A stretch of 64,000 nucleotides of DNA from Lama guanicoe (GCA_013239625.1 MU055753.1:4326153-4390152), one strand, 5' to 3'; numbered from the stretch's first letter, positions 29,601 through 59,737 are shown. Numbers and translations are program-made. Notes: generated by a model from the letters alone, not told the origin.

Positions 29601-32600
29601 TTGTCCTCAACCCCACAGCGGGCTCAGCACAAGGGTCACATTGTTGGGGTGACCCGGCTTGACCTGGAAGCCGTCGAGTTGGACCCTGGTTCCACCTATG
29701 AGGCCAGGCTGCGTGTCCAGATGGCCACCGCGGAGGGCGAGGTGGTGGAGGAAGAGCGTTATGAGGGCCAGTGGAGCGAATGGAGCCAGCCCGTGTGCTT
29801 CCCCTCTCCCCAGAGACGAGGTGGGCACTTCCACACTGCTGCCCTTTGGGGGTCCAGGTTGGCCCTCCCTCCCCTGCTGGTCCCGCCCTTTCACCCTCCT
29901 GGAACCCCTCCCTGAGACAGTCCTGACCCAGAGATGCCCTGAGGCGTGCAGAGAGGAATCACCTGCCACACCTTCCCAGGAGCCTGCTGCTGGTGGCTGT
30001 TGCTGGGAGCAAGTGCAGCCCAGGGGCTGTCCGCCAGGCCTGGTGCTTCTGTCTCTGGAGCCTGGATGTGGCCTCGTTTACTTAGTGGGAGCTGGGCTGA
30101 CCTGGTGCCCTAGGTACTAGGAAGGCTCACTGACCTTGCAGATGGGAAGGGTGAGGCCCTGGGTGCATGGTTCACCCAAGGTGCTTTAGCAAGCGACACA
30201 AACCTTCAAGGCCTGTCATACACCACTCGTACGGGTGCCTTTGCCTCACGGGTTTGGAGGAACACAGCCCCGGGCTGTTCCTGCTCACAGGTCCCCCGAC
30301 CCCAGCTTTGGGGCAGCCTGACAGCACCCTCGTTGCTGTGTGCATCTTCCTGCTGCTGACCAGCCTGACCTACCTGCTCTTCAAGCTTTCACCCAGGTCG
30401 GTAGCCAGGGGTGTATGTGGGAGGATGTGCCTGGGCATGAATGTGTTATCGTACGTGTCAGTGTGTGTCAGTGTGAGTGCGTGTGAGTGTGTGTGGTAGG
30501 CAGGGCACTGAGAGCCAAACCCACAACCCCTCCCCGCACAGTCCTGGATGGGGTTGGGTAGTCAAGCCCCTGCCCTGGACGCGGGGAGTTCCCAAGTTGC
30601 CAGGTGCGTGTGGGGGGCAGTCTGGCCCAAGAGAGCCCTGGACCCAAGGCACTGGGGCCAAGTCGCCTGAGGTTCTTGTCTCCTGCCTCTGGAGGTGCTT
30701 GGTGTTCACTCATTAGTTAACATGTTCCATGAAAGCACAGTGCAGGGCATCTGGTTTTCACGGGACCCTGTTCCCAGCCCTGATGGATGCCACCAAGAAC
30801 CAGATGGACACAAAGTCCCTCCTGAAATTGGCGATCACACATGTCAGGTTACAAGAGCAGGTATTGGGGGGGGCGGCATCATCAAGGAGGGGGTCCCAGA
30901 GAAGATCGGTCAGGTGCAGACAGGTAACAGAGAGAATGAGGGGGTCAGACAAAGAGCAGGGGCAGGTGAGAGAGGAGGTGCTGGGCAGAGCCAGCTGGGC
31001 GGGCCAGCACGTCCAGGAGGATGTCAGGCATGTCCTTGGATCGAAGGACAGCACTTGAAGCATGTCAGTGTGTGATGTGAACTGTTTCATGTTTTGAGAA
31101 TGGATTTTGGTGGTGTACGTGGTCGAGCAGGAGCTTTTGGGAGGCCAGTGGTAGTGTCCAGAGAGGGGTGATCATGTGTGAGCTCGCGAGAGAAGTGGAG
31201 ACGGAGCAAGGGAGGGAACTGCCAGAGTCTTAGGAAGAGAAACTGATGGGATGTGTGAGTGGATGAGATGTGACTGGTGGCCCCTGATGTCACCCCTGAG
31301 GTGGGCCAGGCTCAGGGCAGGTTGGGGAGGTCGACTTGGACCTACTATGTTGGAGCCTCGTGCACTGTCCTCATGGGAAGACCAGTGGGTCCTGGGCAGG
31401 CGGAGCAGGTGCTCGGGGGAAGTCGGGCGGGGCAGGCAGCTGTCTGCTTACTGCACAGTGGGGTTCCTGGAGGTTGCCGGCTTCCTCTGTGACTTGAGGA
31501 CACAGCTGGTCTCCCCCACCCCGGAACCCACCATCACAGCTCACCTTGAAAAGACATGTGTCTTGGTAGAAGCCAGTTCCACGGGGTCATTAGCCAGGGA
31601 GACCGCAGGTGCCAGGCGTAAGGTCTGGACCCAGTGAGAGGGGGGTGTGTGGCAGCAGCACAGATGAGGTTGGGGGGGAGCAAGGTTCCCTGCAGTGACC
31701 TCGGGCCTCCTGGAGTTGGGCCTGGGTAGGAGCCCCCCAGTCTCTGTAGGCCTCTGACTGTCCTCTCTTGGCCTCAGGATGAAGACAACCTTGTACCGGG
31801 ACGTGCCCTCCCCGGGGCCGTTCTTCCAGCCTCTCTACAATGTGCACAACGGGAACTTCCAGGTTCGTGACCCCCTGGCAGGGCAGGGGCTGGGGGCGGG
31901 GCAGGGGTTGCCCGGATCTCTGGCCTGCCCAGGATGTGGGCTTTCGGTGAGGGCTGGGGGCCTTTGTTAGTGCTTTGGGCGTTTCTGGTATATATGGTGG
32001 GTCTAAACTTATACGCTGTGGCTCAGATGGGAAAAAAAAGAGCTTTATTCTCAACTGCTGACTTCTTTTTGTTCTCATGTCTCTAATTCCATTTTTTGTT
32101 TTTGTTTGGTTTTTACTTTTTAATTTTATTTTTTATTGAATTATAGTTGATTTACAATGTTAGTTTCAAGTATACAGCAAAGTGATTCAGTTGTACATAT
32201 ATATATATATATTTTCAGATTTTTCCATTATAGCTCATTATAAGAAGTTGAATATAGTTCCCTGTGCTATACAATAAGTCCTTGTTGTTTATCTGTTTTA
32301 TATATGGACAGTGTGTATCTGTTAATCCCAAACTGCTAACTTATCCTCCCCCTCTCTTCCCCTTTGGTAACCATAGTTTGTTTTCTATGTCTGTGAGTCT
32401 TTTTCTGGTTTGTAAATAAAATTTGTACCTTTTTTTAGATTCCACATACAACTAATAGCATATAATATCTGTCTTCCTCTGGCTGACTTACTTCACTTAG
32501 TATGATGATCTCTAGGTCCATCCATGTTGCTGCAAGTGGCATTATTTCATTCTTTTTAAGGCTGAGTAATATTCCATTGTATATGATATACCAAATCTTC

Positions 32601-34938
32601 TTTTCTTGCCTTTTTAAAAACTTTATTCATTTATGTATTTATTTTACAGTATCATTTTTTAAATTGAAATATAGTTGATGTACAACAGTATATGTTACGG
32701 TATACAATACAGTGATTCACAATTTTTAAAGGTTGTACTCCATTTATAGTTGTTATAAAATGGCTCTGTTCCCCATGGTGTACAGTACATCCTTGTAGCT
32801 TATTTTATACCTGATGGTTTGTGCCTCTTACTCCTCCGCCTCCACCTTGCCCCTCCCCGCCTCCATTTCCCTGCTGGTGACCACTAGTTCCTTCTCCACA
32901 TCTGTGAGTCTGTTTCTTTTCTGTTATATTCACTAGTTTGTTGTGTTTTTTTAGATTCCACATGTGATATCTTACAGTATTTGTCTTTCGGTCTGACTAA
33001 TTTCACTCAACATAGTGCCCTCCGTGCACACCAGAAACTAATACAACATTTTAAATCAACTGTACTTCAGTTAAAAAGCAAGCAAACAAGCAAACGACCG
33101 TTTAGAATACGGGCAGAAGAACTGCTCTAATCCCATTGTTGACGGGGAAATAATGTGCAGGTTCTTGTGATGTTACCTCTGCCTCTTCAGGTTTGCCGCA
33201 GCCTTTCGAGGCAAACGGTCAGTTCACGGTGCCAACCTGGGGGCCCGTCTTCAACAGCCACACATCTGGTCCCTTCTTCTCTGAAGGCGCCTGTGTCTGG
33301 TGGCCGTGGGGAGGGCCTCTTGTGCCTGTGCTCTTGTGCCCGGGGCCCTCCCTGGTCCCTGGGCTACTCTGGTGGCCGCTGTGGAGTGCTCGGCCCCTCC
33401 TGGCATTGCGGCCAGTGAGCTGACTCTACGTGTCCCCGTCGTAGTGCCCTGGGGGCTCTCACAGGCCCCGGGCAAGCTGAGAGCAACCCAAGGGCGGGTC
33501 AGACCCTCCCTGCTGGCCTATGGTTCCTGCTCCAGAGGCAGGAGGTGGCTGAGGAGAAGCTCCAGTGGGTGGTCTCCAGTTCCCACCCTCTCAGGTCCCT
33601 CCCTCTGGGCAAAGCCCAGGAGGCAGAGCTTCCCGGGGTCCACGGACCCGCTCTTCCCAGGCTCTCCCCTCCTGGCCCTGCATGGCTTCCTTCCGCCTGG
33701 CCCTTCTCTCTCGTAACAGGGAGTCTGGCTTTCAAGATTGTCATCCAGACATAGAATTTGAAGCTTAAAGCTGAGCGCTTTGTCTGGGCCGTGTGGGGTA
33801 AAGGTTCTGATGGCCTGGAAAGGTCATCTGCCCCCAGCCCCTTCTCTGTAGAACCATGGTACCTGCCAGGGGTGATTTAGATGCCTCAGTGGCATTCTGG
33901 AGCCACAAGGGGGCTCTCCAGGAGGCAGGGCTGTGATGGAAATTGTGGTCTGTGGTGCACTCGGTGCAGACTCCCAGTCCCTCCTAGGGAGCAGTTTCCT
34001 TTTGCAGGGGGGTCCCTTGTGGCCCTACAGAGGGGTTCAGGTCTGCCGGCCTTGGGTCTAAAGTGCCAGTTCCAACAGCATCTCCTGTCGTAAGTGGAGG
34101 ATAGGGTGAGGTGCCCAGTCTCTGCCGCTGCTGGGAGGGCCTGGAGTGGCAATCAGCCCTCGGTCCCTGTCGCCTGGGTTCAGGCCACCGTGGGCACCGG
34201 GCCCTGCGCTGGGGGAGTGGTGAGGGGCTTGAAGGGAATCAGGGTCTTGTACTGAGGCTGCACTGGTAGGTGGCAGGAAGTGGGGAAGACCAAATGTTTC
34301 AGGCAGAGGCACTGCTTGGCCTCTGGGTGTGGATGTCGGGATGTCAGGAGAGCTTCCTGGAGAAGTGGGGGAGGCTGCTCCCATGGTGAGCCCTGAACAT
34401 GCTGCCTGAGGCCTTCCCTCCTCTCCATGCTCTGTTCTAGACCTGGATAGGGGCCCAGAGAGCCAGTCTACAGCCGAGCCAGGACCATGCCGGGACCCCA
34501 CGAGGAGCCTTGGAGTCCGGTGTCCGGGAGGCCATTGCTTTGCTCACCTATGACCCAGCGGATGCCGGGCAGTCAGGGGGCCTGGAAGAGGAGGAGGAGG
34601 CCAGCACCGGCCTCCCAGCATATGTGTTGCCAGCAGGGCGTATGGAGTGGGGAGGGCAGCCGCCCGCCTACCTGCCGCAGGAGGACTGGGTCCCTGCAAG
34701 CCCTACCAGGCCAGCTCTCCCACGGCCCGAGGACAGTAGCAGCGACTACTGTGCCCTGGGCTGCTACGGGGGTGGCTACCCCTTGGCCTTCACAGGAAGC
34801 ACACAGAGCTCGGAGCCTAGCCTGGCCTGGGCCTGTGGGCTTTCCTGTGACCAGCAGAGCCTGGATGCCCGGCCAGGAGGCAGCTGTGTGGGCATTAGTC
34901 ACAATCAGAGGCAGGATGCTGGTGAACAGGCCATATGA
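23693..34938 (+). CDS. IL9R: Interleukin-9 receptor alpha, 9 coding exons, 489 aa
   Basis: Exons 23693-23720 (MGPSRCVWE), 27680-27793 (signal region MGTWLLICTCIC), 28110-28221, 28327-28505, 29028-29173 (KLDPPSDLQSN), 29619-29820 (WSEWS motif), 30291-30396 (TM LVAVCIFLLLTSLTYLLF), 31778-31862 (Box1 VPSPGPFFQPLY), 34441-34938 (STAT-docking YLPQ). All GT-AG with consistent phases; 1470 nt with no internal stop. Confidence 0.95.
29300..29545 (+). repeat. Degenerate (TG)-rich low-complexity tract in IL9R intron
   Basis: Imperfect gtgtgt/gtgcat repeats. Confidence 0.7.
32090..32600 (-). mobile_element. LINE-1 3' UTR fragment in IL9R intron 8
   Basis: T-rich tail then ttattgaattatagttgatttacaatgt...aggtccatccatgttgctgcaagtggcattatttcattc, an artiodactyl-type L1 3' end in antisense. 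Confidence 0.85.
32601..33076 (-). mobile_element. Chimeric L1-3'-end element, copy A
   Basis: L1 3' UTR with an extra AATAAA tail, preceded by an inverted L1 tail; same architecture as 51288-51758. Confidence 0.7.
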
Positions 34939-37074: not shown

Positions 37075-38545
37075 TTTCTTTTTCTTTGGTTTTCAATGAG
37101 GTCAGATTCACATAATACAAAATTAACTATATCTGAATTGTATGATTTGGTGACATTTAGTATGTGAATGACATTTGAAACCAGCACCTCTGTCTAGTTC
37201 CAAGACATCCTCAGTCTCCAGAAGGAGACCCTGCCCCTCCCACCCTCCCTCTGTCCTCGGTGACCACTGGTCTGCTTTGTCTCTGGATTTACCACTTGTG
37301 GACGTTTGATAGAAGTGGAATCACACAGTACGTGGCCTACCGTGTTCATTTTTTTTCTCTTAACGTAGTGTTTTTGAGGCTCATCCACATTGTAGTGTCA
37401 GTGCCTCAGTTCTTTTTTGTGGCTGAATTATTACCCCAGTGTGTGGATGGACTACGTTCTGTTTATCCATTCATCTTGAGGTGGATGTTTGGGTTATTTC
37501 CACCTTTTCACTTGTTCTTCTTTTTAACATTTTTATTGATTTATAATCATTTTACAATGTTGTGTCAAATTCCAGTGTAGAGCACAATTTTTCAGTTATA
37601 CACGAACATATATATATTTCAGTTTTTTCTCTGTGAGCTACCATAAGATCTTGTGTATGTTTCCCTGTGCTATACAGTATAATCCTGTTTATCTATTCTA
37701 CAATTTTGAAATCCCAGTCTATCCCTTCCCATCCCCCGCCCATTTGGCAACCACAAGTTTGTATTCTATGTCTATGAGTCTATCTCTGTTTTGTATTTAT
37801 GCTTTTTTTTTAAGATTCCACATATGCGCGATCTCATATGGTATTTTTTTTTCTTTCTGGCTTACTTCACTTAGAATGACATTCTCCAGGAGCATCCATG
37901 TTGCTGCAAATCCTTTTCACTCTTGAGAACAGTGCTGCTCTGAACATTCCTGTACAACTTTTTGTTTGAATATCTGTTTTCAGTTCTTTTGTGTATATTC
38001 CTAGGGGTGGCTTTTGTAGATTATAAGTTAATTCTATGTTTATCTTTTTGAGGATCTGTCAAACTGTCTTCCAAAGTGGCTGCAACATTTCACATTTCCA
38101 TCAGTAATATACTAGGGTTCCAATTTCTCCATATCTTTGCCAACTTGTTATGTCCATTTTTTTGATAACAGCTATTCTAACAGATGCGAAATGACCCCTC
38201 CCTGTGATTTTGATCTGCAGGTCCCTGACGGCTAGTAATGTTGTGTGATTTGTGTATCTTCTTTGGAGGAAAGTCTGCTCAAGTCCTTTGTCCATTTTAA
38301 ATTTGGTTTATTTACCTTTTTGTTGCTGAGTTGTAAGAGCGCTTTATATATTCTGGAGACAANNNNNNNNNNNNNNNNNNNNNNNNNNNNNNNNNNNNNN
38401 NNNNNNNNNNNNNNNNNNNNNNNNNNNNNNNNNNNNNNNNNNNNNNNNNNNNNNNNNNNNNNNNNNNNNNNNNNNNNNNNNNNNNNNNNNNNNNNNNNNN
38501 GCCTGTGTTTTTGGTGCCATACCCAAGAAATCATTGCCAAGTCCA
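37075..38545 (-). mobile_element. Old LINE-1 3' region containing a younger nested L1 3' end (37513-37911)
   Basis: L1-like minus-strand translations (VSRIYKALLQLSNKK..WTKDLSR). The nested insert is flanked by the 10-bp TSD ccttttcact (37503-37512 and 37912-37921). Confidence 0.8.
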
Positions 38546-39224
38546 ATGCCAGTAAACACACGAAAAGATGTTCAATGGCTGTCCCATTAGGCACCCCACC
38601 AGCAGTGAATGAAAGTTCCTGTTACAACTGCTAATTAACAAAACTTAATTCAATACAGATTTTATTCATTTCCAATGTTAATTTAAGTCAGCATTTTTTG
38701 CTCCACCATCGAGTTTTTTCCATACATTTCTTTTTTTCCCCACACATTTCTAATACAGTTTGATTCTGTGTCACATTGCATAGTCCATCCTATGACACTC
38801 CTTAATCCATATTCTGGTCCCCTTGACATGGATGTACCCCAGTTTGCTTATGCATTCATCTATTAAAGGACATCCTGATCTCTTCAAGTTTTTACCCACT
38901 GTGAGTAAAGCTGCTATGCATAATTACAGCCTTGTTTGCATTTGGACATAAGTTTTCAAAGCATTTGTTGGAAGCAAGATTGTTGGATCCCAAGGTGAGA
39001 CTTGTTTAGCTTTGGGGGAAACCGCCCACCTGTCTTATGAAGTGGCTGTACGTGCATTCCACCAGCAATGAAGGAGAGTTCTTGTTCCTCACCACCAGCA
39101 ACTGGTATTTTCATATTTTTGGAGTTTAGCAGTTCTAATAGGTGTGCTGTGATAGCTCATGATTTTAATCTGTAATTCCTTAATAGTGCAGGATGCTGAG
39201 CGTATCTGTACGTCTTCTTTGGCT

Positions 39225-39920
39225 AGGCACCTGTTCAGATCTTTACCCACTTTTATGGGGTTGTTTTAGAGTTCTTTGTATATTTTGAGTCCAAATCCTT
39301 TATCAGATATGTGCTTCACAAATATTTTTCTCTCAGTTTGTGGCTTGTCTTTTGGTTTTTTTGAATAACGTCTTTCCTAGAGTAGAAATCTTTAATTTTG
39401 TAAAGTCTGTTATATTCCTTGTTTTTCTGTTGTAAGTTGGCTTTCTGTGTTGTGTGATAAAACTCAAAGCTCATGATCTACATGACTGAACCCAAGGTCA
39501 TGTAAATGTTCTTCCATGTTTACCTCTATAATTTCAATAGTTCTGCATTTCAAATTTGTCTATCGATAATTTTGAGTGAGTTCGGTATAAGTCATAAGGC
39601 TTATGGCTACACTCACTTCATTCCATACGGTCTCCCATTAATTGTTCCTTAACTATTTTTGGAGACGTTAAGGGACATTGTCTCCATTTCAGTTTGAATT
39701 TCCAGTTTAATGGATTCAGCACTTCTGCCAGCAGGGGGCAATGTCTCCACTGGACTGTGAACTTGGCCCTGCTCTCTCTGCACTGACCACAGGGTGGCGC
39801 TGAGCCTGCACCTCTTACCCATGTGGCTTCCACCATGGACTTGGCTCTGTGCTGAGGAGCTGTCTCTCCTCAGGCCCCACCAGGGCTGCGCTCTGGGGAA
39901 AAACTGCAGGTCAGCGTCTA
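39225..39920. repeat. Local duplication, copy 1 (old L1 fragment plus GC-richer segment with CTCF-like motifs)
   Basis: Collinear similarity with 41630-42340: ttcagatcttt, aaactcaaagct, caaatttgtct, ttccttaactatttt, ttcagtttgaatttcca, agcagggggca, tcagc.tcta. Confidence 0.75.
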
Positions 39921-40254
39921 TGCAACAGGAGCTCAGTCTCCTTAGGATTCTGGGGCTGTGGCTTCAGGACAAGGCGGGGCTGCGTCCATGCTGACAGAAG
40001 CTGGATTTCCTGATGACCCTGGTGCTTCCAGGAGGAAAAGCTGAGGACAAGTGGGGAGAAGCTCCCTGTGTGCAGCTGACTGCTGGGGGGTCGGGTGAGT
40101 CCATCTTCAGACGACCCAGGTGGGCTTGGGGTGTGGAAAACTGGGGTTTTATCTGTTTTGTGTCTGGTGTAGACAGCACGTGGCATGTGGTGTCCTCTTT
40201 TCCCAGCACTTCCTGCTGAGGGCGCTGTCCTTCCCCTTGGGGTGTTCCGGCCAC

Positions 40255-40830
40255 ATAGGTGTAGGTTTATTTCTGGGCTCTGTGTTCTGTTCCTCTGCTC
40301 CACGTGCCTGTTTTCATCCCAGTTCCACACTGTTTTGGTGACCGTAGCTTCGTATTGTAGTGTGAAGTCAGGAGATGCCTCCAGCCTGTTCTTTCTTAGG
40401 CCACTTTGGCTATTCGGGGTCCTTTGTGGTTCCACACAAATATTAGGGTGATTCGCTCTATTTCTGTGAATAATGCCATTGGGATTTTGATAGGGATTGT
40501 ATTCACTGTTTATACAGTCCTTAAGGGTAGAATGGACATTTTAACAAAATTAATTCTTCCATCCATGAGTTCGGGGTATCTTTCCATTTATTTGTGTCTT
40601 TTTCAATTTCTTCATCAATGTTTCAAAGTATTCAGCGTGCAGGGCTTTCATGGCCTTGGTTAAATTTACTCCTAGGTATTTTGTTCTTTTTGATGCAATT
40701 ATAAATAGGACTGTTTTCTTTCTCTTTCTGATGGTTCATTATTAGTGTTTAGAAATGCAGATGATTTCTGTGTATTGATTTTGAAACTTCTGAATTCATT
40801 TATTATTTCTAATTGGTTTGTGGTAGAATG
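40255..40830 (-). mobile_element. LINE-1 ORF2 fragment
   Basis: Minus-strand [40 protein letters not shown] resembles L1 ORF2. Confidence 0.8.
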
Positions 40831-41629
40831 ATGTGAAAAATTGGAATTAAAAAAAATACCACTGTTTCTACCACACCCAGGTCATCCACAGCACAGAAGA
40901 GAGTGGATCCTCATAAAGCCTTTCCACAGTGCCTCTAAATTGTGTGGAGCTTGGGTGAACTGGATCCGGGTAAGGCTTGGCTTCTGTGTGGAAATCTGCT
41001 GTTTTCTTAGCATTTCTGGCATGGTATTGACATGGTGTCTTGAAAAGTAATTTACTTTCCAGTAATTTCAAACGTACAGACAACTTTACCTCCATAAAAA
41101 CAAGTCTTGTATGTTGATGAAATATATTCCTGGATAGAAATATTGATGTTATTGGAAATGGAAGTGGTTTCATGAATTATTTTTCAGATTATTTATTGTG
41201 AGTGTATACAAAAAAGATAGACTATTATGAATATGTAACTTTGCTGAATTAGTTGATTAGCTTAAATATTTTTGTGTTGATTATAGTAAGTTTTATATAT
41301 GAGAGGATGTGATCTGAGTTCCCTGAATAGACACAGTTTTCTTTTTTTCCATTTACACACGTATGGCTTTTTTTCTCAAAACTGGGTAGAACTTCCAGTA
41401 TACTGTAACAGCGGTGAAGGCCAGGTTTCAGGCTTTGCTCCTGACTCAAGAATTAAATCCTTCTGTCTTTAACATTGAACATGTTTGCCCTAGCTTTGTG
41501 TACTACTATTTCCATATAGAACTAGACCAGGGTCACACAGAACTCAGGAGTTGAGCTGGACATTGTGTTTCTGGCCCCTCCCTCCCCCATCCTGGGCATA
41601 ATGTGGTATGGTATCTGTATCTTCTCTGG

Positions 41630-42340
41630 CCAGGTGTCCATTCAGATCTTTCCCTATTTGGAATAGGGTTGTTTGCATTAGAGTTCTTTGCATATTTTGA
41701 GACAAAATCTTTCTGAGACATGTGCTTGCAAATAATTTTACTCCTAGTGTGTACTTGTATTCCAATGTCCTGAACAACATCTCTCACAGAGTAGAAACAT
41801 TTCATTTGATAAAGTCCATAGTATTGCTTATTTTCCTTTGTAGATTGCCTTTTTGTGTCGTGTGTTGAAACTCAAAGCTTAGGTTCTACGTGACCAAATC
41901 CGAGATTATGTTGACTTTCTTCCATGTTTTCTTCTATATTTTATGGAGTTTTGCGTGTCAAATTTGTCTCTAAAAACGTTTGAGGGAATGTGGTATAAGA
42001 CAAGGTTTGCAGCCTCATTCACTGCATTCCATGTGATCAGCAGTGAATGGTTCCTTAACTATTTTAAAGAAGTTATGGATGGTTGGCTTTCTTTCAGTTT
42101 GAATTTCCAAAGCTGAGTGGACTCAGCAGGTGCGCTAGCAGGGGGCATGGTCTCCAGTGAAGTGTGAGCAAGGCCTGACCTGCACATTTCCAACTGACTG
42201 CAGGGCGATGCTGAGCCCACCTCTCTGAAACACTGCATGGTGGTTCCACCTGGGCCTGGCCCTGCGTGCAGCTGAAAGCAGTTCTGCCTCCTTCAGACAG
42301 CCTGGGCTTGGGCTTTGCCAATGCAGAATCTCAGCATCTA
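41630..42340. repeat. Local duplication, copy 2
   Basis: Direct-orientation, diverged paralog of 39225-39920. Confidence 0.75.
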
Positions 42341-45224
42341 GGCTGGAAATCAAATGACAGCATGAAATTCTAGCTGGACACTAGGCCACCTGCAAACATT
42401 GAAACTGAGACCTACCCTCTCCTGCTTAAAAGCATAGATTGGCGTGTTGCGCAGCCAAGTTCGAGCAGAGCTAGCACCAAGTTAAGACCTCCTGGGTGTT
42501 CTCAGAGCCTCTGAGAGAGACCTGAAATCAGAACAGCTTTCTCAGTCACATGTTCAGAACACGGGAGAGTCCGTGTTCTCTCCCGTTACATCTGTCAGCA
42601 CCCCCCCCCCCGATATCACATCACAGACAACTCTGGCAAACACTACTGTGGGAGTGAAGACCTTGGCTCTGGAACCAGATGTGGGTTCTGGCTGTGTGAC
42701 TTGGCCAAGCTGCTGTCCCTCTCTGTGCCTCTGCTTCCTGCTATCAGACGGAATAATTGCACCTCTCCCAGTGGGGTGTTAGGAATGAGAGTGAGGTTAT
42801 GCAGGCAAAGAGCTGGGCACCCGGTAAGTCTCACAAAAGTTCATGATTAGAGTTGTTATAGAGACTTTCTGATCATTGTCCAACGCCAACTTTGTTCTTT
42901 TCTTTAAACAAAGGAAGAAACAAAGACCAGAGAGGAAAAGCAACTTGGCCAATGTCATACAGCCAGCCAGCGATAATCAAGATTAGCAGTCAGTCCCCTG
43001 TCTCCATCAAAGATCCTTGTATACCAACTCCACAGTGGGACCTGAGCAGCTAAGAGCCCAAAAGTTTCATTCCACCCACACTCAAGTACTTAGTGTGTGC
43101 CTGGCCCAGTACTGCACACGGATACAGCCTTGCCCTCTGAGAGTTTACCCCCAGACTCGGAGGAAACCAGCATTTACAGAAATAGTCATGAGACTGAGGC
43201 AGGCATGACCAAGGGAGCCTCCTGACTGGCTGGGTGGGGACGAGGGTGGTCAAGGAAGGCTTCCTGGAGGAGGTGGTGGTGGCTGGGATCTGAAGGATGA
43301 AGAGGAGTCTAGGGTTTGTGGGCAGAAGGCTCCAGTGAGGAAAGGCCACAAAAGAGGCAGGTCCTAGACATGTCCCTTGGGGTGTGGCCAGGGCAGGGCT
43401 CTTGACCCTCAAGCAGAGGGGGCTACCAGCTCTTCAGAGTGGAATTCCTCAAATCAAGGCCTGGGACGCACCTACTGTGACATGAAACATTAAGATTCCC
43501 GAGCCCTAATCCAGACCCTCTGAATCTGGATCTCCAGGGCAGGACCCAAGAAGCTGTATCATTATTGCTGTTATTTTTACAGGCTCCCCAGGGGACCCTG
43601 CTACCCTCCAGGGTTTCAGCGCCAACACTGCAGCTATACTGGAGTCGGGGGGAGTCAGAGAGGTGTGCTGAAACAGGCCAGCACACAGAAGCTGTGAGTC
43701 TGTCCAGCCATGTCCCAAAACTTGCCTGAGGGTCTGCTCTGTGCCAGGCCTGGACACACAGGAACTCGGGGAGGGGAAGTGGGAAGGAGGGGAGTCTTAG
43801 GGAATAAGACCCAGGACACACCCTCTGCAAAGTCAACCAAAGAGGGAGTCTTTCTCAAAGTGGGGTCCCAGGAACCCCAGTCCTATAAATTACCCCTGAA
43901 ATGAAGGCTTTGTCAGTCAAGGTGGTTAGGAAAACCCAACCCCGCAATACATTCATGAGCCAATAAAGGCTCTGAGAAGTCCTGCAGTGGAGAAAGCTGG
44001 TATTTAGTGAGTGTCCAGGAAGGCTCAGAAAAGGATGTTGTTGATGGAGGATCTGAGTGAGGCGAGGTAAGGCTGCCAGGTCATGGGCCGACCCCCATCG
44101 CCTGCATCCCAGGCTGAGCAGACCCCATGGGGACAGTGAGCACTTCTGCCCCTCAGCCCTACCCCAGCCACTCACCATCAGCCTGGCCTCACCAGTCAGA
44201 CGTGGTGAGTCTCAACCAAAAAATTTAACCCCTGATGGTTTGGGCCACGACTGGGAACCTGCAGGGTGGGTCAGGTGGGGGACTTTGCTCCTCTGGAGCT
44301 CATACCGGCTCCACCTCAGGGCAAGGCCAGTGCCCAAACCAGCTGGATAGGGCAGGTTTGAGAAAGCACCTTCTGGATCCCTCCCTGGCCCGCCCGTTAT
44401 TCTAGCTGAAGCCCAGCACTAGAAGGGACCCGGGGTGAGGGGACAGCCAGCCCCAGGGACCTGGTAGTCCTGCTGGAGAACAAAGGACAGCTCAGCAGGA
44501 GCTTATGGTCAGACAGGCGTTGGTTCCAAGTCCTGTTAGGCCACTTACTGCTTGGACCATCCCAGGCAAGCACCTTACCCTCAAGATGCCTCAGTCTGTC
44601 ACCTGAGAGCGACAGCAGAGTCATTATGGTAATTTGACACTTATTGCACACACCTAACCAGACAGCAGACACATTCATGGGCATTACTTTGACAGCATCC
44701 TCACTATAAGCCCCTGGGGGAGGTTTGTCTGCCCCTTTACAGACGAGGCAAGTAAGGTTCAGAGATGACAAGGCACCTGCCCAGGGTCACACAGCTTATG
44801 AATGGGAGCCAGGATCGTCTCCTCAGACAGTCTTGTTCCAGAGGCAACATGATCAAACACTGGGCTACAGCTACTCATAGGGGTGCTGAGAAGAGCCAAC
44901 AAACAGCAACCACCACCATCACCACAGTAGTATGAGCTCACATTTACTTTCTACAGCCAGGCTCCCTGCTCCCTTCTTAATCTTCATTACCACCTCAGGT
45001 AGGTGGTGGCCAAGTGGGTGATCATATTATTATCTCCACTTTACTGATGTGAAAATGGAGGACCAGAGAGGTTCAGTAACTTTCCCAAAGTCACACAGCA
45101 TTTAAATGTCAGTGCCAGAATTCTAACCCAGGCAGGCCCCAGAGACCAGGCTGGTTAACAACACCACGTGACAGTCCTGCTGGGCTGCCACCCCACCACA
45201 GGTGCTCAACAGATTCACTTAAAG

Positions 45225-45960
45225 GCCACATGCCCCAAACCCCAATGGGATACCATCGCTCACCCACTAGGATGGCAATAATCAAATAGACAATAACAAT
45301 TGTTGGCAAGGATGTGGAGAAATCAGAACTCGCACACACTGCTGACTGGACTGTAAAATGGTACAGCCGCTTCGGAAAACAGTCTTAAAGTTGGTAAACA
45401 TCAAGGTGCCCACGACCCAGCAATTCTACTTGACATCTGCCCAGGAGAGATGAAAACACAGGTCCACACAAAGACTTGTACACAAATGTTCACAGCAGGA
45501 CTACTTACAAGAGACAGAAAGTGGAAACAACATGTTCAACTGATGAATAGATACAATGTGGACCATGCACAGAATGGTATACAATTCTGCCAAAAAAATG
45601 AATGCAATGCTGATACACACTACAGTATGGGGAANNNNNNNNNNNNNNNNNNNNNNNNNNNNNNNNNNNNNNNNNNNNNNNNNNNNNNNNNNNNNNNNNN
45701 NNNNNNNNNNNNNNNNNNNNNNNNNNNNNNNNNNNNNNNNNNNNNNNNNNNNNNNNNNNNNNNGGGCTGGGGTAGGGTTGGGGATTAGGTGGGGAGTGAG
45801 TGCTAAAGGGTGTGGGTTTCTAAGGTGATGAAATGCTCTAAAATTGATTATAGTGATGGTTGATAATTCAGTGAATATACTAAAAAACATTGAATTGTAC
45901 ACTTTAAATGAGTGAACTCTATGGTATGTGAGTTATATCTCAAAGCTGTTACCAAAAACA
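45225..45960 (+). mobile_element. Old LINE-1 3' end
   Basis: MKTQVHTKTCTQMFTAGLLT and the tail tgaattgtacactttaaatg..atggtatgtgagttatatctcaaagctgtt. Confidence 0.8.
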
Positions 45961-47273
45961 TTGGCAAGTGCCATTTAAAAGTGATAGGGGTTTCCTTCTT
46001 CCCCCACCCCCTTGAATGGGTCCCGCCTTTTATCCTGTTTTCCGTGGAGGCTGGGACAGCTCCACCTTATGCCCAACAGCCTGGAAGATGCTGGTTAACA
46101 CTCAACAGAGGGTTGACCATGTGCCCGGCTGGTGCCAAGCAAATCACAGAAAGATTAGCTCATTTAATCCTAACACCCCGTGAAGTAGCACTGCTCTCCC
46201 ACTTTACAGATGGGGAAACAGAGGCACGGAGCAACTAGATAACTTGGCCCCGGTTCCACTGCCAGAAAGCGGGGTGGAGCTGGGATTCCAATCCAGGCCT
46301 GTGGAGCACAGTCTCAGCACTTCTGCCTTTTGGGTTTGGAGTCCTGAATGAGAGGCCCCAAAGGGTCCTGCATTCCCCGCCCCCATCCAGCTGGCCACGG
46401 GAGCGGACCTGTGTCCCCCTGAGAGCTGCAGAGCCCTGTGCCAGGAGCACAGGAATGCGGGCAGGTCGGGCACCAGCAGGGAGGGGGCGCAGATCCCAAG
46501 AGGGCCGGGAACTGGCTGGGCCGGTCCAGCTTTTCACCTCGCTAGCGAGCCACACCAAGGCAGCCAGAAGAGGCCCCTGGGGACCGCCAGCCTGGCTGAC
46601 GAAGGCCCAGATCCAGCCCTTCCCTCTCAACCTCTTCTCAGTCCTGTCCCAGCCACGGACACGAAAGTCTCCTGGCTGAGCCAAGAAAGCTGAGATGCCC
46701 CTGCCCACCTTAGAGAAGGGAAGGGACCAGGGAGGCAGATCAAAGTGACACGCTGGGAGAAGGACATATCCAGCCTCCCTCCATTTACTCAGGAGTTTAA
46801 CACAGACATAGGTGCTGAGGGCAGTGGCCAAGGGCACTAGAAGGTGCCCCTGAAGTCATCCAGCCCCACCTGCTCATTACACAGATGGGCAGACAGAGGC
46901 CCTCTGAAGTGAAGGCACCCGCCCAAGGTCACACAGGGGGCAGCTGGTGTCTGGAGCCAGATAGGGTTCAAATCCTGACTGCACCAAACATCAGTGTAAC
47001 CTTGGAGGAGCTACTTTATATTTCTGGGCCTTGGTTTTATCATCTGTCAAATGGGTGAGATACATCTTCTCTAGGTAAGTGAAGTGGGAAGGGAAGGGTC
47101 AGAGTCAGTTCCAGAAACACTGGAATCAGGTTTCGAAGACCACTCTGGGACTCGAGGACTGAGCTGGAGGTTCAGAGCAGCCTCTAGGGGCCCAAAAACG
47201 GATTAGACATCATATAAGTTCATGAGCCCGGCACACCGGAGACACTCCATAAATATTCATTCTAATCACCTAC

Positions 47274-47747
47274 TGTTGGACCAACAGACGTTCTTCAAAG
47301 TCCAATGACCCCCATTCCTGGGCTCTCAGATGTCTGCCTGTGATCCCTCAACAGATAAAGCACATTCTTTACTAGGTGTGTTTCCCCTAACAAACTAATA
47401 GCCCTAGGTAATAATCTCACAGTAGCTCAGGCTGGTTCATTTCAGCCCACCTTGTCAGAGTTATAAACCCCACCACTCTTCACAGACCCTAAACCTCTCA
47501 CCTCACCTACAGCCAATCAGAGCCCTGTGCACAAGCCGATCAGGCGCCTTGTGACCTGACCTTGTAAAACACCCCAGTAACCGGCCGTTGGGGCTCACAC
47601 AGGCACCTCTTGCCTGTGTGGCCCGCTGTTGCCTATGGCAGCGTACCCTAATAAACTCCCTTCTATTCTCACGTTTTATCTCTGGTGAATTCTCTTACCA
47701 ACCTGTGCCTCACCTTGTCGCTGACCAGCCGCCCTGGTGTGCCCACA
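47274..47747 (+). mobile_element. Solo ERV LTR
   Basis: TG...CA ends, about 474 bp, CCAAT at 47513, TATA-like tgtaaaa at ~47563, AATAAA at 47649-47654; TSD degraded. Confidence 0.7.
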
Positions 47748-48353
47748 CCGCCTTCCACATTCAAGGAGCCCCGTAAATGGTGACAATGACCATTCATTCA
47801 CGAACACATATCCACTGTGTTTTACTCCCCACAGGGGTTGCCATTCACAACAAAGCTGACTCCTTACATTGGTCCCTGGTCTGTGTACAGGGTTCCGCCA
47901 TGGTCCCCCTTTCTCTCCTGGGGACTCCTGCTGGCCAGCGGCGCCTGGTCTTGTAAAACAGATTCCTTCTGAAAAACAGTAACTTCACAGCACGAGGACA
48001 GCAAGGTGAACACCGCCAGGGAGAAGGTGCATCCACGCAGTGGAATCCAGACGCCGGCACCATGGAGAACACATCCCTCCCTCGGAATCCTCCCCAGTAA
48101 TGCACAACCTCCATCTCATGGCTGGGAGCTGGCAGACAAACCCAAATTGAGGGGTGTTCTACGAAATACTTAACGAGACCTCACCAAGTGACCAGTCACA
48201 AAAGACAAGGCCGAGAAACTGTCAGGCAGGAAGAGACGAGGGAGACGTGACGACTAAATGCAACCTGGGGTCCTGGAACAGAAAGAGGACATCGAGGGGA
48301 CTGGGGAGACAGACCAAAGTTCATAGTTTAGTTTTTTAAAAAAAGGTTTCTCC

Positions 48354-50391
48354 TAGGATTTCTGGTCAAGACAGTAGAGTGGTGGGACCACGAGCTCGCC
48401 TCTCCTCATGACTACAGCAAAACCACAACTGACTGCTAAACAATCATTGGGAAAAAAGACTCAAACCTAGCAAAAAAGATCTTCAACTGGAAACATAAAG
48501 AGGGAAACACAGGGGGACTGTAGGAGGGGTGTGCTCACGATATAATCGGGCCCCATACCCCTTGGGTGGGCGACTCACAAGCTGAAGAACAATTGAGCCG
48601 CAGAGGCCCTCCCACGGCAGTGAGAGCTCTGAGCCCCACGTCAGGCTCCACAGCCCAGGGTCCTGGCATTGGGAGGAGGAGATACCAGGACATCTGGTTT
48701 TGAAGGCCAGTGGGGCTTAGCCCCAGAAGCCCCATGGGACTGGGGGAAACAGAGACCTCATTCTCTTGGGAAGTGTACACTGAATCTTGCATGCGCCAGG
48801 TCCAAGGGTAGAGGCAGTGATTTCATAGGAACCTGGGTCAGACCTGCCTGCTGGTTCTGTAAGGTCTCCTTGGGGGGCAGGGGATAGCTGCGGCTCACCC
48901 AGGGGACACAAAAGCTGGTGGCGGAAGAGTGTTCATCTACATGAGCTTTCCTGAGGCTGACATCTTGATTGGACCATTAGCACCAAGACCCAGCCCCACC
49001 CAACAGCCTGTAGGCTTAAGTGCTGGGAAGCCTCAGGCCAAACAACAAACTGGGTGGGAACACAGCCCCATGCATCAGCAGACTTCCTGAGCCACAAACT
49101 GCCTCTAGACAGGACCCTAGATAAGGCCCTACCACCAGAGGACCAGGACCAAGCTCCACCCAGAAGTGGGCAGGCACCGACTCCTCCTGCCAGGAAACCT
49201 GCATAAACCTCTAGTCCAGCCTCATCCACCAGGGAGCAGATACCAGAAGTAAGAAAACAACAACCCCAAAGCCTGTGGAAGGAATCCACAAACACAGGCC
49301 AGACTCTACAGTGGGATGGGCTGGACGCTGCCCCTTGGGTGACAAGAGAGGAACGTATTGCTGGGATGCACAGAACATCTCCCAGAGGGCCACCTCTCCA
49401 AGATCGAGAAACATAACTGACCTACCTAAAAATACAAACAGAAATCTAGACAATATGAGGAGGCAGAGGAACATCTCCCAGCCCAAGGCACAAGACAAAA
49501 TCCCAGAAGAAGAAATACGTGATGAGGAGACAGGCAATTTATCTGAGAAAGAGGTTAGAGTGATGATGGCAAAGATGTTCAGAGGAGTATAGAAGCACAG
49601 AGCAAAGTTTTTAGCAAAGAGCTGGAAAATATAGAGAACACCCAGAGCTGGAGAATAAAATCACTGAAATGATTAACACACTAGAAGGAACCAAGAATAG
49701 ACTAAATGAGGCAGAAGAACGGATGGATCAGTGAGCTAGAAGACAGATTAGTGGAAATCACTACTGCAGAACAGAAAAAAGAAAAAAGAATGAAAGGAAA
49801 TGAGGATCGTTTAAGAGAGCTCTGGGACAACATGAAGCGCACTAATGTTCACATTATAGGGGTCCCAGAAAGAGCAAAAAGGACCTGAGAAAATTTTTGG
49901 AGAGATTATCACTGAAAACTTCCCTAACTTGGGAAAGGAAACAGTCACCCAAGTCCAGGAAGCACAGAGAGTTTCACACAGGATCAACCCAAAAAGGAGC
50001 ACACCAAGGCACATAGGAATCAAACCGACAAAACCTAAGGATAAGGAGAAAAATAATAAAATCAGCAAGGGAAAAGCAACAAATAACACACAAGGGAACT
50101 CCCATAAGGTTATCAGCTGACTTTTCAGCAGAAACTCTATAGGCCAGAAAGGACTGGCATGATATATTTGAAGTGATGAAAGGGAAAAATTTACAACCAA
50201 GAATACTCTATCCAGCAAGGCTCTTACTCAGACTTGATGGAGAAATCAAAAGCTTCACAGATAAACAAAAGCTAAAAAAATTCAGCACCACCAAACCAGC
50301 TTTACAACAAATGTTAAAGGAACTTCTCTCGTCATCAAACCACATGAAAAGAGAAAAAAAAGAAGAGGGAAAAAAAGACCTACAAAAGATT
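48354..50391 (+). mobile_element. LINE-1 5' UTR and disrupted ORF1 (3'-truncated)
   Basis: GC-richer 5' UTR, then ORF1 peptides MRRQRNISQPKAQDK.., WISELEDRLVEITTAEQKKEKRMK..LRELWDNMKRTNVHIIGVPE, MKGKNLQPRILYPARLLLRLDGEIKSFTDKQKLKKFSTTKPALQQMLKELL, broken by stops and frameshifts. Confidence 0.92.
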
Positions 50392-50538
50392 NNNNNNNNN
50401 NNNNNNNNNNNNNNNNNNNNNNNNNNNNNNNNNNNNNNNNNNNNNNNNNNNNNNNNNNNNNNNNNNNNNNNNNNNNNNNNNNNNNNNNNNNNNNNNNNNN
50501 NNNNNNNNNNNNNNNNNNNNNNNNNNNNNNNNNNNNNN

Positions 50539-51129
50539 TTCTAATCCAAGAGCACAAGATATCTTTCCATTTCTTTGTATCATCTTCACCTCCTTCATCA
50601 GTGTTTTACAGTTTTCAGAGTGTAGGGTAACCTCCTTGGTTAAGTTTACTTCTAGGTATGTTGTTGTTTTTGATGCAATGAAAATGTTTATGCCAGCTAT
50701 AAAATTGTGGTTTTTGAAGTGACAAAAAAAAAGTGAATGAAGGGCCGCAAATGGCAAGATATCCTTTTTTTGGGTGAGTTGTATTCCATTGCATATATAC
50801 ATTATATCTTCTTCATCCATTCATCTATTGATGTGCACCTGGGATGCGTCCATATCTTGGCAATTATAAATGGTGCTGCTGTTAATAGTGAGGTGTATGT
50901 ATCCTTTTGAATTAATGTCTTTGTTTTTCTCGGATATATGCCCAGGAGTGGGATTTTTCAGCCACACTCCATATTGTTTTCCATGGTGGCTGCACCAATT
51001 TACATTCCCACCAACAGCATACAAGGGTTCCCTTTTCCCCACACCCTTGCCAGCATTTGTTATTTGTGTTCTTTTTGATGATGGCCATTCTGACAGGCGT
51101 GAGATGGTGTCTCACTGTGATTTGGACTT
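50539..51129 (-). mobile_element. LINE-1 ORF2 fragments in antisense
   Basis: YLEVNLTKEV.LHSENCKTLMKE and [49 protein letters not shown]. Confidence 0.88.
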
Positions 51130-51287
51130 NNNNNNNNNNNNNNNNNNNNNNNNNNNNNNNNNNNNNNNNNNNNNNNNNNNNNNNNNNNNNNNNNNNNNNN
51201 NNNNNNNNNNNNNNNNNNNNNNNNNNNNNNNNNNNNNNNNNNNNNNNNNNNNNNNNNNNNNNNNNNNNNNNNNNNNNNNNNNNNNNN

Positions 51288-51758
51288 ATTTAAAATGGTG
51301 TATTAGTTTCTGGTGTACAGCATGGATGGACTTGGTGGGCATTATGCTACATGAAATAAGTCAGACAGAGAAAGACAAATACTGTAAGATATCATTTACA
51401 TGTAGAGTCTAAAAACATATAACAAACTAGTGAATATAACAGAAAAGAAGCAGACTCACAGATGTAGAGAAGGAACTAGTGGTCACCAGTGAGGAGAGGG
51501 AAGGAGGAGGGGCAAGATGGAGGTGGAGGAGTAAGAGGTACAAATTATCAGGTATAAAATAAACTACAAGCATGTATTGTACACAATGGGGAATATGGCC
51601 AATATTTTATAGTAACTATAAATGGAGTGTAACCTTTAAAAATTGTGAATCACTATACTGTATACCTGTAACATATAATACTGTATATCAACTATAATTT
51701 AAAAATATGATATTGTGAAATAAACACATAAATGAATAAAGTTTTTGGAAAAAAAAAG
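51288..51758 (+). mobile_element. Chimeric L1-3'-end element, copy B
   Basis: Inverted L1 tail joined at cagcat to an L1 3' end (WMDLVGIMLHEISQTEKDKYCKIS), plus an extra AATAAA/poly-A tail; homologous to 32601-33076. Confidence 0.7.
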
Positions 51759-56479: not shown

Positions 56480-57230
56480 GTGCTTCCCAGCTCAAGGATG
56501 GCCCTCGGGCCCCGCGTTCCCGCGCGTCGCACACTCCTGGCTGGGTTCCTCGCCCTCTGGGCCCCCCAGGCCAGTGCTTCTTGGGCATCCTCGCAGCCCT
56601 CGCGACCCGGCTGTTCCCCCCACGCCCTGAGCGGCGCTTCCCAGCTCAGCGCGACCCCCAGCGAGCGACCCGCGGGCGCCTCCTCACCTGCGGGTCCGAA
56701 CCGTGGGGCTGTATTTGTCTCTGTTTCTCTTCCTGAAGAGCGAGTTCACGGTGGCGCTCAGGGCGGGCGGACGGGGCGCCGGGTCGCGGCGCAGGGCTGG
56801 GCACTGGGCAGCGGCGGGCCCGGCGTGCACGGAGGGGCGAGCAGCGCGCGGAGCTGAGCGGACCGCGACGCCGGAGCCACCAGCGCGGAGCGGCCGCGGC
56901 GCCCAGTCTCTGTTCTCGAGGGGCGGGGCGCGCGCAAGCCACCGGCTCTTCCGGCCCCTCGCGAGAGGGTGGTGCTTACCTTCCCGGAGGCGGGGCTCCG
57001 GGTGGGCGGGACTTCCAGGCGCGCCGGGCGCCCACCCTTGGCTCCGCGGAATGAGTAGGGGATCCGGCTCGGGCTGGAGGTGAGGCACCCGGTCCTGCCG
57101 GGACAACACCCACACCACAGCCGGGACACTCGCGGGCTGGGGCGCACTGGCCGCTTTCCCGAGCACGCCCAGCACCCTCCTCACCCCGACCCTTGGCCTG
57201 GCGCGCCCCCTGGCTGAGGGCCGTCACCTG
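56480..57230. promoter_or_regulatory. CpG island, PPL-type TATA-less promoter
   Basis: Strong CpG density and GC boxes (ggggcgggg ~56920-56928) surrounding the PPL-like first exon. Confidence 0.85.
56688..56749 (-). pseudogene. PPL: Orphan periplakin first coding exon with GTG in place of ATG
   Basis: Minus strand: GCCACC GTG AAC TCG CTC TTC AGG AAG AGA AAC AGA GAC AAA TAC AGC CCC ACG GTT CGG ACC CGC AG|gtgagg = (V)NSLFRKRNRDKYSPTVRTR, versus the recalled mammalian periplakin N-terminus MNSLFRKRNKGKYSPTVQTRS. 62 coding nt with an intact donor; no further PPL exon found downstream in the window. Confidence 0.82.
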
Positions 57231-59535
57231 GCTCTCCGCTGCCTCTCTTGGGCATCAGGGCTCCCCTTTCTTCGGCTGACACCCAGGTGGGCCCCCCAGG
57301 CAGGTGTGGCAGAGATCGGACTGGTCTCTGTGCCCCTGATAGCTAGTGAATTACTTTCAGGTGGTAGCATCCGTTGAAGGCAATTGAGAAAAGGGAGCTC
57401 TGGAGCGCAACTGCATGAGTTCAAATCCTGCTGCCGCAACGGTCAGTTGACTCCTTGGCAAGGCTTCTTGCTGCTTCCAGCCTCAGTTTCCTTATTTGTC
57501 AAACAGTGATAACAACAGGCCCATCCCATAGGGTTCTGAGGAGATTCCTGTAGGTAATCACACAAAGCACTTACTTAGCATGTGCCGAATGTGCTAAGTT
57601 CTCTGTGCCAGCAGGAGGCCAGGTTAGACCGTGGCCCTGGTGCTGTGCGCCTGTGGAAAAGGCTGCAGTTGGAGAGAGTAGAGTCTGACGGCGAGCCCAA
57701 GTAGGGTCCTGACAACCGGGAGACTTTAGCGCCACTCTAGAGAGCACTGGGAATTCTGAGCCCAGCTGGGAAGGGGGAGAACACAGTGGGAAGATGTCAG
57801 AAGGCATCAGAGATAAATTATGGCCAAAGGGCTATTATGGCTCAGATGGGGAGTGATGAGGTCTGCAGAGGAGGAAGGAAGGGTCCCTCACTGGGTATTC
57901 AGAGTCCTCAGGCCAGTCCCTTCCCTAGCTTTTTTTTTTTTTTTTAATAGAATAAGGAGGTCGGTGGGGAAGTGGATTCCTACAGACTTTTCCCACCCCA
58001 GACCCCAGAGCATCTGAGAACAGTGTCCTTTAGACCATCTATTGTCCCTGCCACCAAAGGATTTCAGTGTTTAAGGGTTACAAAGACTCTAGGAAAACCT
58101 TATTTTAAGGGGGCATCTGCAGGTGGGCTTAAGGGGGGTCTGTGGCTCCTCTTACAGTTGCTTTCAAAATGTGTGTGTCCATATGTGCATTTTTTCTGGG
58201 GGAGCATCTATCAGTTTCAATTGGTTCATCCACTCACTCTTTCAACAGATATGACTACTCTAGCAATCTTGGCTGCCTGGTTCTGCTACATTGGTGAGAA
58301 AAGGGAAAACCCCAAAAACAACAGTCTTTCTCTTAAGGGAGGGGGAAAGACATATTAATAATAATATAAAAAACTGATGACTTCCAATTGTTAACTTTTC
58401 AAAAGTGTCTGGAGACCTTAAAAGGAAAAGGACCCCAGGGGGTGCAGCAGCTTAGCAGCTGTGCATTAGGCTCCCCAGAGGAGTTTGTAAAATGCAGATT
58501 CCAGGGCTCTGGACCCCCCTCACCGGCATCCTGGCTCCTGACTAGGGAGTGTAGGAAGGGTCCTAGGAATTGAACTTTTGGCAAGTCACCCTGGTGGTCC
58601 CTGGCCTCTCTGTGAGAAGCCAAGAGTGAGGGATCCTGCCTGTAGCCCCGTAGCTGCTCAGGTTGGGAGCCCTGAGCAGATCTTCCAGCCAAACCTAACC
58701 CCTCTTTCCCCTCTGAACTTGGCTTTGCCTGGCTCCTCTCTCAGGTGCTCCACCAAGGTGGGGAGTTCCCCATGAGGCAGCTGAGAGCTTGAGCAATTCC
58801 CTCCATCCTGAAGTGACTTCCCTTCCCAAGTCTGAGGTTAGAATGGGGCCTGGTGGCCAACTGGAGACTGCAAGTCCAGCTGGCCAACATGGGAAGCAGG
58901 TGTCAGGGAGGAGCCAAGGCTTCAGAATGCATGTGGGGGGTGCTACCTGGGGTTTGCAGAAGCCTGAACTGAGCACAGAGCTTGCTCACCTAGGACCCCT
59001 TCCTGCACTCCAGGTGGGTCACAGAAGGGGCTTAGAAGGGAACATTGTCCATTCCCCTGTTTTATGGCACAACTCTTCCTGGAAACCCTTTCCTTACTTG
59101 TCCCTATTACATTTCCCTCGGAGGCTAAACTTACCTTGGGAGATGTTCACGGCAGCACTGTTACCAGGGAGGAGGCCCTGAGAACAACCTGATGGCCACT
59201 GGGACTGGGTTCAGGAGGTTAAATAACTCAGGGCGCATCTACACCGGGAAGACCACGTAGCTGGAAAAGAGCACGATGTGGAAGGCAGCGTCAGGCACCA
59301 GAAGCAGAGTGCAAGGGAGAAGCAGGAAGCATGTGCGTGTATATGCACAGAAAACTTCTGGAAGGATCCACAAGAAACTGTTAGCCAGGAGTCCCCTCAG
59401 GAGAGAAATCTGAATTTTCATTGTATGCTCTTTTATAGTGTTTGGATTTTATTTTATTTTTAAAAAATTTCCTTTGGATATTATTTTTATATGTGCTTGG
59501 ATTGTTTTTTCAATAGCCTTTTCCAGTTACTTTTT

Positions 59536-59737
59536 TGTTTAAGAGTTTTTCATGCTGTACTTTTTTTTTTTTTTTTTTGCAAAAATTCTGTGGTTTGAAC
59601 CCAGGATCTTGCACATTCTAACACTTTGCTCTGCCCCTGAATTTTTTTTTTTTTTTTTAGCAGAAATCCTGAGGATTGAACCCAGGACCCAGCACATGCT
59701 AAGCATATGCTCTGCCACTGGGCTATACTAACCCTCC
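59536..59737 (-). mobile_element. Dimeric tRNA-derived SINE (Vic-1-like)
   Basis: Two head-to-tail monomers, each with a gggttcaa B-box and its own poly-A, inside one 14-bp TSD tccagttacttttt (59522-59535 and 59738-59751). Confidence 0.78.

Follow-up and report, generated by a model that had tools for sequence, protein, structure and literature searches.

The 64-kb window analyzed here (the whole 64,000-nucleotide stretch of DNA) carries on its minus strand the promoter, 5'UTR, and first coding exon of the periplakin gene, PPL, a feature of at least 0.75 kb that is, by its sequence, a genuine PPL 5' end in genomic, non-processed form. Whether a chromosomal rearrangement in the camelid lineage left this promoter, 5'UTR, and exon without the rest of the gene is, in our judgment, evenly balanced, and it is the reading that we develop below. 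The positions of the features discussed are collected in Table 1.

Table 1. Positions of the PPL 5' module, the exons predicted to be spliced to it, and the neighboring genes and repeats in the window.
Feature	Position (nt)	Strand	Evidence and remarks
PPL coding exon 1 remnant	56688..56749	-	Sequence and tblastn; donor GT at 56687-56686
PPL 5'UTR and proximal promoter	56750..57434	-	Collinear with PPL 5' flanks from other mammals
CpG island enclosing the exon	56501..57200	.	GC 0.75, o/e 0.89; sharp bounds, uneroded
L1-rich spacer separating IL9R from the PPL remnant	37200..51300	.	L1 pieces on both strands; Transposase_22 (E 9e-13), Tnp_22_trimer
N runs in the spacer	38363-38500, 45635-45763, 50392-50538, 51130-51287		572 nt in all
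Exon 2 of XP_031303600 (isoform X1)	42018..42344	-	Repeat-derived; acceptor tttccag intact in the window
Terminal coding exon of XP_031303601 (isoform X2)	26830..26894	-	Acceptor cccattag intact
IL9R coding region	27682..34938	+	Convergent with the PPL remnant
POLR3K exon 1	13987..14097	+	Zn_ribbon_RPB9 (E 5.7e-8); exon 2 at ~15323-15410
SNRNP25 exon	12263-12472	-	Ubiquitin_4 (E 5e-10)
RHBDF1 (iRhom1)	3387..10080	+	Start codon to C-terminus ...LDAQLH and stop; PDB 9q7y 'Inactive rhomboid protein 1' (E 8e-32)

The exon proved to be exactly what the preliminary description had reported, a 62-nt minus-strand exon with a GCCACC leader, a GTG start, and an intact donor, lying within a CpG island. 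It consists of the GTG that was once an ATG, 19 further codons, and the AG of a split codon, and 56749-56688 on the minus strand translates to VNSLFRKRNRDKYSPTVRTR. Around the start the minus strand reads GCGCCACC/GTG AAC TCG ... CGC AG/GTGAGG; written out, the first half of this stretch is ...CCCTGAGCGCCACC GTG AAC TCG CTC TTC AGG AAG AGA AAC AGA and the second half GAC AAA TAC AGC CCC ACG GTT CGG ACC CGC AG/GTGAGGAG, so that GCCACC serves as the leader and CAG/GTGAGG as the donor. At the exon-intron boundary (...ACC CGC AG/GTGAGG), the exon is thus followed by a GT donor and not by exon 2 sequence. Within the 64-kb window the PPL module is present as a single copy, and no second one was found.

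Assignment of the exon to PPL, and not to some other gene as could have been the case, rests on comparison with proteins and genomic ORFs of other species. Searched against all representatives of a 1.84-billion-protein library, a 31-residue translation covering the exon region returned three proteins: a dromedary LOC cluster, an ORF from one other species, and an unrelated repeat protein. The second of these, P0003, clusters with P0007 and is an unspliced genomic ORF whose C-terminal end is ...ATMNSLFRKRNKGKYSPTVRTRR before the stop, and a word-index search with this end found P0010, a 191-aa transcript-derived fragment carrying Pfam family PF23160. The N-terminus of P0010 reads MNSLFRKRNKGKYSPTVRTR-SVSNKELSELIEQLQKNADQVE, the residues after MNSLFRKRNKGKYSPTVRTR being SVSNKELSELIEQLQKNADQVERNIVDTEAKMQ..., and its relatives in a homologue search include entries labelled 'periplakin-like'. 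In a tblastn comparison of P0010 with the window, the sole match was 56749-56690 (17/20 identical, E 1.8e-6). The PPL N-terminal peptide is MNSLFRKRNKGKYSPTV(R/Q)TR, and the window exon matches P0003, P0007-P0009, P0011, and P0012 as well.

The same comparisons extend beyond the exon on both sides. The four unspliced genomic ORFs P0003, P0007, P0008, and P0009 end in ...TRR and a stop, as does the window frame, so the exon-intron junction is the same as that of other species. Upstream, P0007/P0003 match 56821-56699, P0009 matches 56947-57039, and P0008 matches 57274-57369 and 57393-57434, P0008 and P0009 being ORFs of other species that run over the PPL 5' flank; all of these matches lie on the minus strand and in order, and PPL promoter homology thereby extends ~690 bp upstream of exon 1. 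This collinear flank homology, together with the GT donor after the exon, identifies a genomic copy and not a processed retrocopy, and the flank matches of P0009 and P0008 join that of P0010 in confirming that the exon is PPL exon 1. Further upstream still, at 59561-59720, an 81-bp unit occurs twice in tandem (83% match), each unit opening with a T run ahead of a tRNA-like SINE core; this tandem probably consists of two neighboring SINE fragments.

Three attributes of a functional PPL exon 1 are absent here, namely an ATG start, a PPL exon 2 downstream, and the retention of K10 and G11. The real differences from the PPL consensus are M1>V, K10>R, and G11>D: the window encodes V1 (GTG at 56749-56747), R10, and D11, the dromedary sequence encodes V1, R10, and G11, and M1, K10, and G11 are found in 7/7 of the other sequences compared (P0003, P0007, P0008, P0009, P0010, P0011, P0012), even P0012, the most divergent of the seven (MHSLFKRRNKGKYSPTVQKK), keeping K10-G11. 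Three residue changes had been claimed for the exon besides the start codon, and K>R and G>D stand. The third, Q>R, does not, as P0003, P0007, and P0010 also read VRTR; arginine at position 18 is ordinary in non-camelid sequences and is no camelid change. A read error, raised earlier as a possible source of the GTG, can be set aside, since the dromedary RefSeq models XP_031303600-603 carry the same V1 and R10. The coding capacity of the exon has thus decayed as proposed, with the ATG gone and two residues altered that are invariant in the seven other sequences, and the fact that G11D differs even between the two camelid sequences indicates relaxed constraint. We infer that the exon is dead for periplakin coding and is evolving without coding constraint.

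A working PPL exon 1 would nevertheless be compatible with several of these features. The donor is perfect, the GCCACC Kozak-like leader is kept, and the CpG island is intact, so that the exon might be used through non-AUG (GTG) initiation or serve as a non-coding leader; exon 2 would then lie outside the window, at the far end of a very large intron. Such an intron would need to exceed 56.7 kb and to contain at least four unrelated genes (IL9R-POLR3K-SNRNP25-RHBDF1), in the dromedary models the donor is joined to exons foreign to PPL, and the changes at the invariant K10 and G11, with G11D distinguishing two camelid sequences, speak against a protein-coding role; we consider a working exon highly improbable.

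The body of PPL is missing from the window. In a regular mRNA the PPL sequence following exon 1 is SISNKELSELIEQ..., with the exon 2 peptide given as SISNKELSELIEQLQKNADQVE..., and the preliminary description had found no such exon downstream on the minus strand. Searches with P0010 and about 60 further PPL fragments bear this out, the 35-56 kb interval included: PPL residues 21-205 have no match on either strand of the 64-kb window, and the best other window match of P0010 has E > 2. The fragments tested include P0061 and P0062, genomic ORFs that span exon 2 and flanking intron, and P0012 (205 aa); P0015, a human cDNA product by its UniRef name, was left out of the comparison. No match to PPL exons 2-6 was found on either strand of the window. 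The idea that exon 2 is hidden in one of the masked stretches was considered and rejected as implausible: of the eight N runs in the window (129-158 nt each), the four that fall in the spacer are flanked throughout by L1 ORF1/ORF2, except that one side of one run is another repeat. Elsewhere around the module (42.5-56.4 and 57.3-64 kb), none of the 20 longest open frames belongs to a Pfam family, one C2-set match falling below the cut-off, and no other gene, such as SEC14L5 or a subtelomeric gene, was found there. Outside the window, word-index protein searches, whose length limit kept them below the 1,750 aa of a complete periplakin, returned only N-terminal PPL fragments and no camelid PPL, and a degenerate exon-1 pattern that also fits the window version gave 0 matches in a metagenome scan. 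Our literature search found nothing on camelid periplakin, its loss, or its location; the exon-1 peptide string is present in one unrelated degron paper.

What lies downstream of exon 1 on the minus strand is, in order, a set of L1s and then IL9R, POLR3K, SNRNP25, and RHBDF1. The first ~5 kb past the donor are without recognizable coding sequence and give way to L1 pieces, which are interrupted by a repeat-derived segment at 42.0-42.4 kb and resume before IL9R. The earlier statement that the DNA past exon 1 runs into L1s and the 3' end of IL9R is borne out by the Transposase_22 pieces and by a match to PDB 7ox5 ('Interleukin-9 receptor', E 5.7e-29) in the WSEWS exon of IL9R, within 29601-29912. 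The ORF at 27565-28158 holds WTLESKALMQEMGTWLL from the IL9R signal-peptide exon, and the last coding exon is in frame at 34441-34938, ending ...DYCALGCYG...AGEQAI before the stop, a sequence recognizable as the IL9R cytoplasmic tail. IL9R and the PPL remnant are convergent and ~21.7 kb apart. In the exons inspected (signal-peptide, WSEWS, transmembrane, and last exon, with its stop at 34936-34938), IL9R has the look of a gene and not of a pseudogene.

The remaining neighbors were identified in part by domain matches and in part by inspection, the SNRNP25 and POLR3K peptides having been recognized by eye. The first coding exons of these two genes are only a few hundred bases apart, and a CpG island at 13301-14300 (GC 0.68, o/e 0.83) is common to the divergent SNRNP25 (minus strand) and POLR3K (plus strand). 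Three N runs (7010-7144, 9318-9465, and 9923-10061) fall inside RHBDF1, and at least two of them cover coding sequence, one masking the exon that follows 'WLSLFLHAG' and starts ...ILH, another the central part of the last exon ahead of ...LDAQLH. Since these runs sit on ordinary RHBDF1 exons, the masking looks arbitrary and unlike assembly gaps at repeats.

Much of what can be said about the present use of the module comes from the dromedary. The best library match, P0001, and its cluster mates P0004-P0006 correspond to RefSeq XP_031303600 to XP_031303603 of Camelus dromedarius, which are computational (XP_) predictions labelled 'formin-like protein 14' and 'predicted GPI-anchored protein 58'. 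These names look artefactual, the product of a long open frame that crosses the GC-rich promoter and 5'UTR of PPL, and the sole recognizable protein-coding piece in XP_031303600-603 is the 20-residue PPL remnant. All four models begin in the GC-rich upstream flank, run in frame through ...SATVNSLFRKRNRGKYSPTVRTR, and exit at the old donor, which the predicted isoforms join to non-PPL exons whose acceptors are intact in the window. In isoform X1 the next exon is the repeat-derived one at 42 kb, where the frames of the window and of the dromedary are off by a 1-nt indel. The repeat copy supplying this exon lies at 41960-42224; a second copy at 39552-39815 is in the same orientation and 70% identical, the copy at 39.55-39.8 kb being the older. 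In isoform X2 the final 22 residues are identical to the translation of 26895-26830 on the minus strand of the window (22/22; tblastn, 100%). Since this 26.9-kb exon sits ~0.8 kb beyond the IL9R signal-peptide exon, on its 5' side, the intron of isoform X2 crosses the whole IL9R coding region in antisense.

These models also bear on whether the junction is real. An assembly artefact, in which the IL9R block was wrongly joined to the PPL 5' end, for instance across an L1 or a gap, would find a natural setting in the 20 kb between IL9R and the PPL exon, which are L1-rich and hold four N runs. Where their frames agree, the window and the dromedary models differ by ~1-2% substitutions, and they are further distinguished by G11D and several indels; they are therefore different genome sequences. 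As the dromedary models share it, the order from PPL exon 1 through the 42-kb exon to IL9R is not peculiar to one assembly, and the second genome sequence appears, on these predicted models, to have the same neighborhood. Misassembly had been named beforehand as the circumstance that would undo the IL9R-PPL junction, and models that run from exon 1 to the far side of IL9R, linking it to the equivalents of the 42.3-kb and 26.9-kb exons in a different genome sequence, argue against a one-off misassembly. The placement of N runs on ordinary exons within RHBDF1 and the loss of the ATG in both genomes, which fits a real orphan, point the same way, leaving an artefact as a very slight prospect.

The module as a whole has not followed its exon into decay. 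The preliminary description spoke of a decaying promoter, a characterization that we would withdraw: the CpG island is fully kept, and in the dromedary it is annotated as the first exon of four isoforms. Across 56480-57230 the GC content is 0.746 with 90 CpGs and a CpG o/e of 0.86, against a CpG o/e of 0.26 and 0.23 in the 1-kb flanks. A silenced, methylated island should erode toward the flank value of ~0.25, and in this respect the promoter is unlike the unconstrained exon. From the predicted models and the state of the island, we infer that the promoter is still in use and that the exon no longer serves PPL. In vivo transcription from the PPL module is likewise presumed on the basis of the predicted models and the intact island.

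If so, the product is most likely non-coding in camelids. Besides the 1-nt indel in the 42-kb exon, the long upstream 'ORF' also shifts frame between the window and the dromedary, and no Pfam family was found in the window ORF; the indel, the upstream frame shifts, the lack of a Pfam family, and RefSeq names of the low-complexity type together indicate a non-coding or junk-ORF unit. The models thus suggest that the orphaned PPL promoter has probably been recycled into a transcript antisense to IL9R.

How the module came to lie beside IL9R can be approached from the human arrangement, where the first genes at the 16p tip are POLR3K-SNRNP25-RHBDF1-MPG-NPRL3 (PMC5506863). The simplest putative origin would be one inversion of a terminal block of ~5 Mb, with putative breaks distal to IL9R and within PPL intron 1, the second of them falling in the interval from 56.7 kb to the 3' end of IL9R (~35-36 kb). 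PPL exons 2-22 would then have ended up, reversed in orientation, at the new end of the chromosome. The module would now serve to start a lineage-specific transcript antisense to IL9R, as its promoter and first exon, and would be spliced to new exons, a repeat-derived one at 42.3 kb and another past IL9R at 26.9 kb. Human PPL lies ~4.9 Mb proximal of the 16p tip and is transcribed toward the telomere; with PPL pointing at the tip ancestrally, a single inversion would put exon 1 facing the distal side of IL9R, as is seen in the window.

The principal competing origin is a segmental duplication that carried the PPL 5' end, comprising the promoter, exon 1, some of intron 1, and upstream DNA, as a copy to a subtelomeric site distal to IL9R, in which case the real PPL would keep its own exon 1 elsewhere, the copy having lost its ATG and been co-opted as a non-coding promoter. 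The features of the window fit a duplication equally well, whether the single exon, the genomic non-processed structure, the coding decay, or the lack of exon 2. In humans, IL9R pseudogene copies occur at several chromosome ends, and the IL9R neighborhood is duplication-prone. Subtelomeric genes of 16p have also been listed (PMC5506863). Library searches with the exon and the 179-aa ORF of the window turned up no camelid-like copy beyond the dromedary cluster, a result that counts weakly against duplication as camelid genomic ORFs are barely represented; a silent copy would be expected to lose its CpG island, which here is intact; and the orientation is the one that an inversion predicts, though it would also arise with 50% chance under duplication. 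We rank an inversion first, with the window fitting both origins, and consider a duplication unlikely without dismissing it. As a side issue, a telomere-repeat scar was looked for and rejected: TRF detected no array in 35-64 kb, and the one near-match, CCCTAACCCTGA at 55060-55071, is an isolated 12-mer amid ordinary sequence that we attribute to chance.

Carried to its full extent, the inversion would mean that PPL was cut in two by a terminal inversion on the alpha-globin side in the ancestor of living camels, and perhaps of all camelids, that camelids are either natural periplakin knock-outs or make the protein from a new promoter with a new N-terminus, and that the old promoter was recycled in antisense across IL9R. 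We put forward this complete scenario only tentatively.

Should the split be true, it would offer a clean natural case of a rearrangement breaking a cornified-envelope/desmosome gene, in which two fates can be followed side by side, that of a decaying coding exon and that of a CpG-island promoter surviving by driving something else. It would also ask whether camelid epithelia are without periplakin or have an N-terminally altered form. The N-terminal region of periplakin targets the protein to the membrane, and mice that lack periplakin are viable. An antisense transcript through IL9R could, in addition, affect IL9R expression. If the module is instead a duplicated fragment, it would amount to a routine pseudo-exon with a recycled promoter.

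A parallel from outside the camelids is offered by P0011, a 338-aa NCBI RefSeq model from Manis javanica (pangolin) named 'nuclear envelope pore membrane protein POM 121-like', which opens with the PPL exon-1 peptide MNSLFRKRNKGKYSPKVQTRR before changing to unrelated Ser/Pro-rich sequence. PPL exon 1 is thus annotated in a second lineage as spliced to something else, and P0011 may be either an annotation chimera or another rearrangement.

Set against the canonical 5' end of mammalian PPL, the module in the window shares the 20-residue exon (17/20), the ...CGC AG/GTGA junction (TRR and a stop when unspliced), the GC-rich promoter blocks, and the CpG island, and differs in having no ATG, in K10R and G11D, in the absence of exon 2, and in the presence of IL9R downstream. 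It resembles the human subtelomeric duplications of IL9R in being a gene fragment directly distal to IL9R with genomic, non-processed structure, but no second copy was found and there are no telomere-like arrays near the junction. As in a gene-cutting inversion that leaves an orphan CpG island, exon 1 stands apart from its gene, beside the block found at the human tip and in the predicted orientation; here, however, the window covers a single junction of the two, and its position is not fixed to the base. Xist, which arose from Lnx3, is a non-coding RNA gene built from protein-coding remains and repeats, and the module resembles it: a formerly coding promoter and exon would provide the start and the donor, with downstream exons drawn from repeats or unrelated DNA, and there is no conserved frame. 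The module differs in that the transcript described here comes from predicted RefSeq models alone and the parent gene may persist elsewhere. By its sequence, the PPL orphan is shared by no fewer than two genome sequences of camelids.
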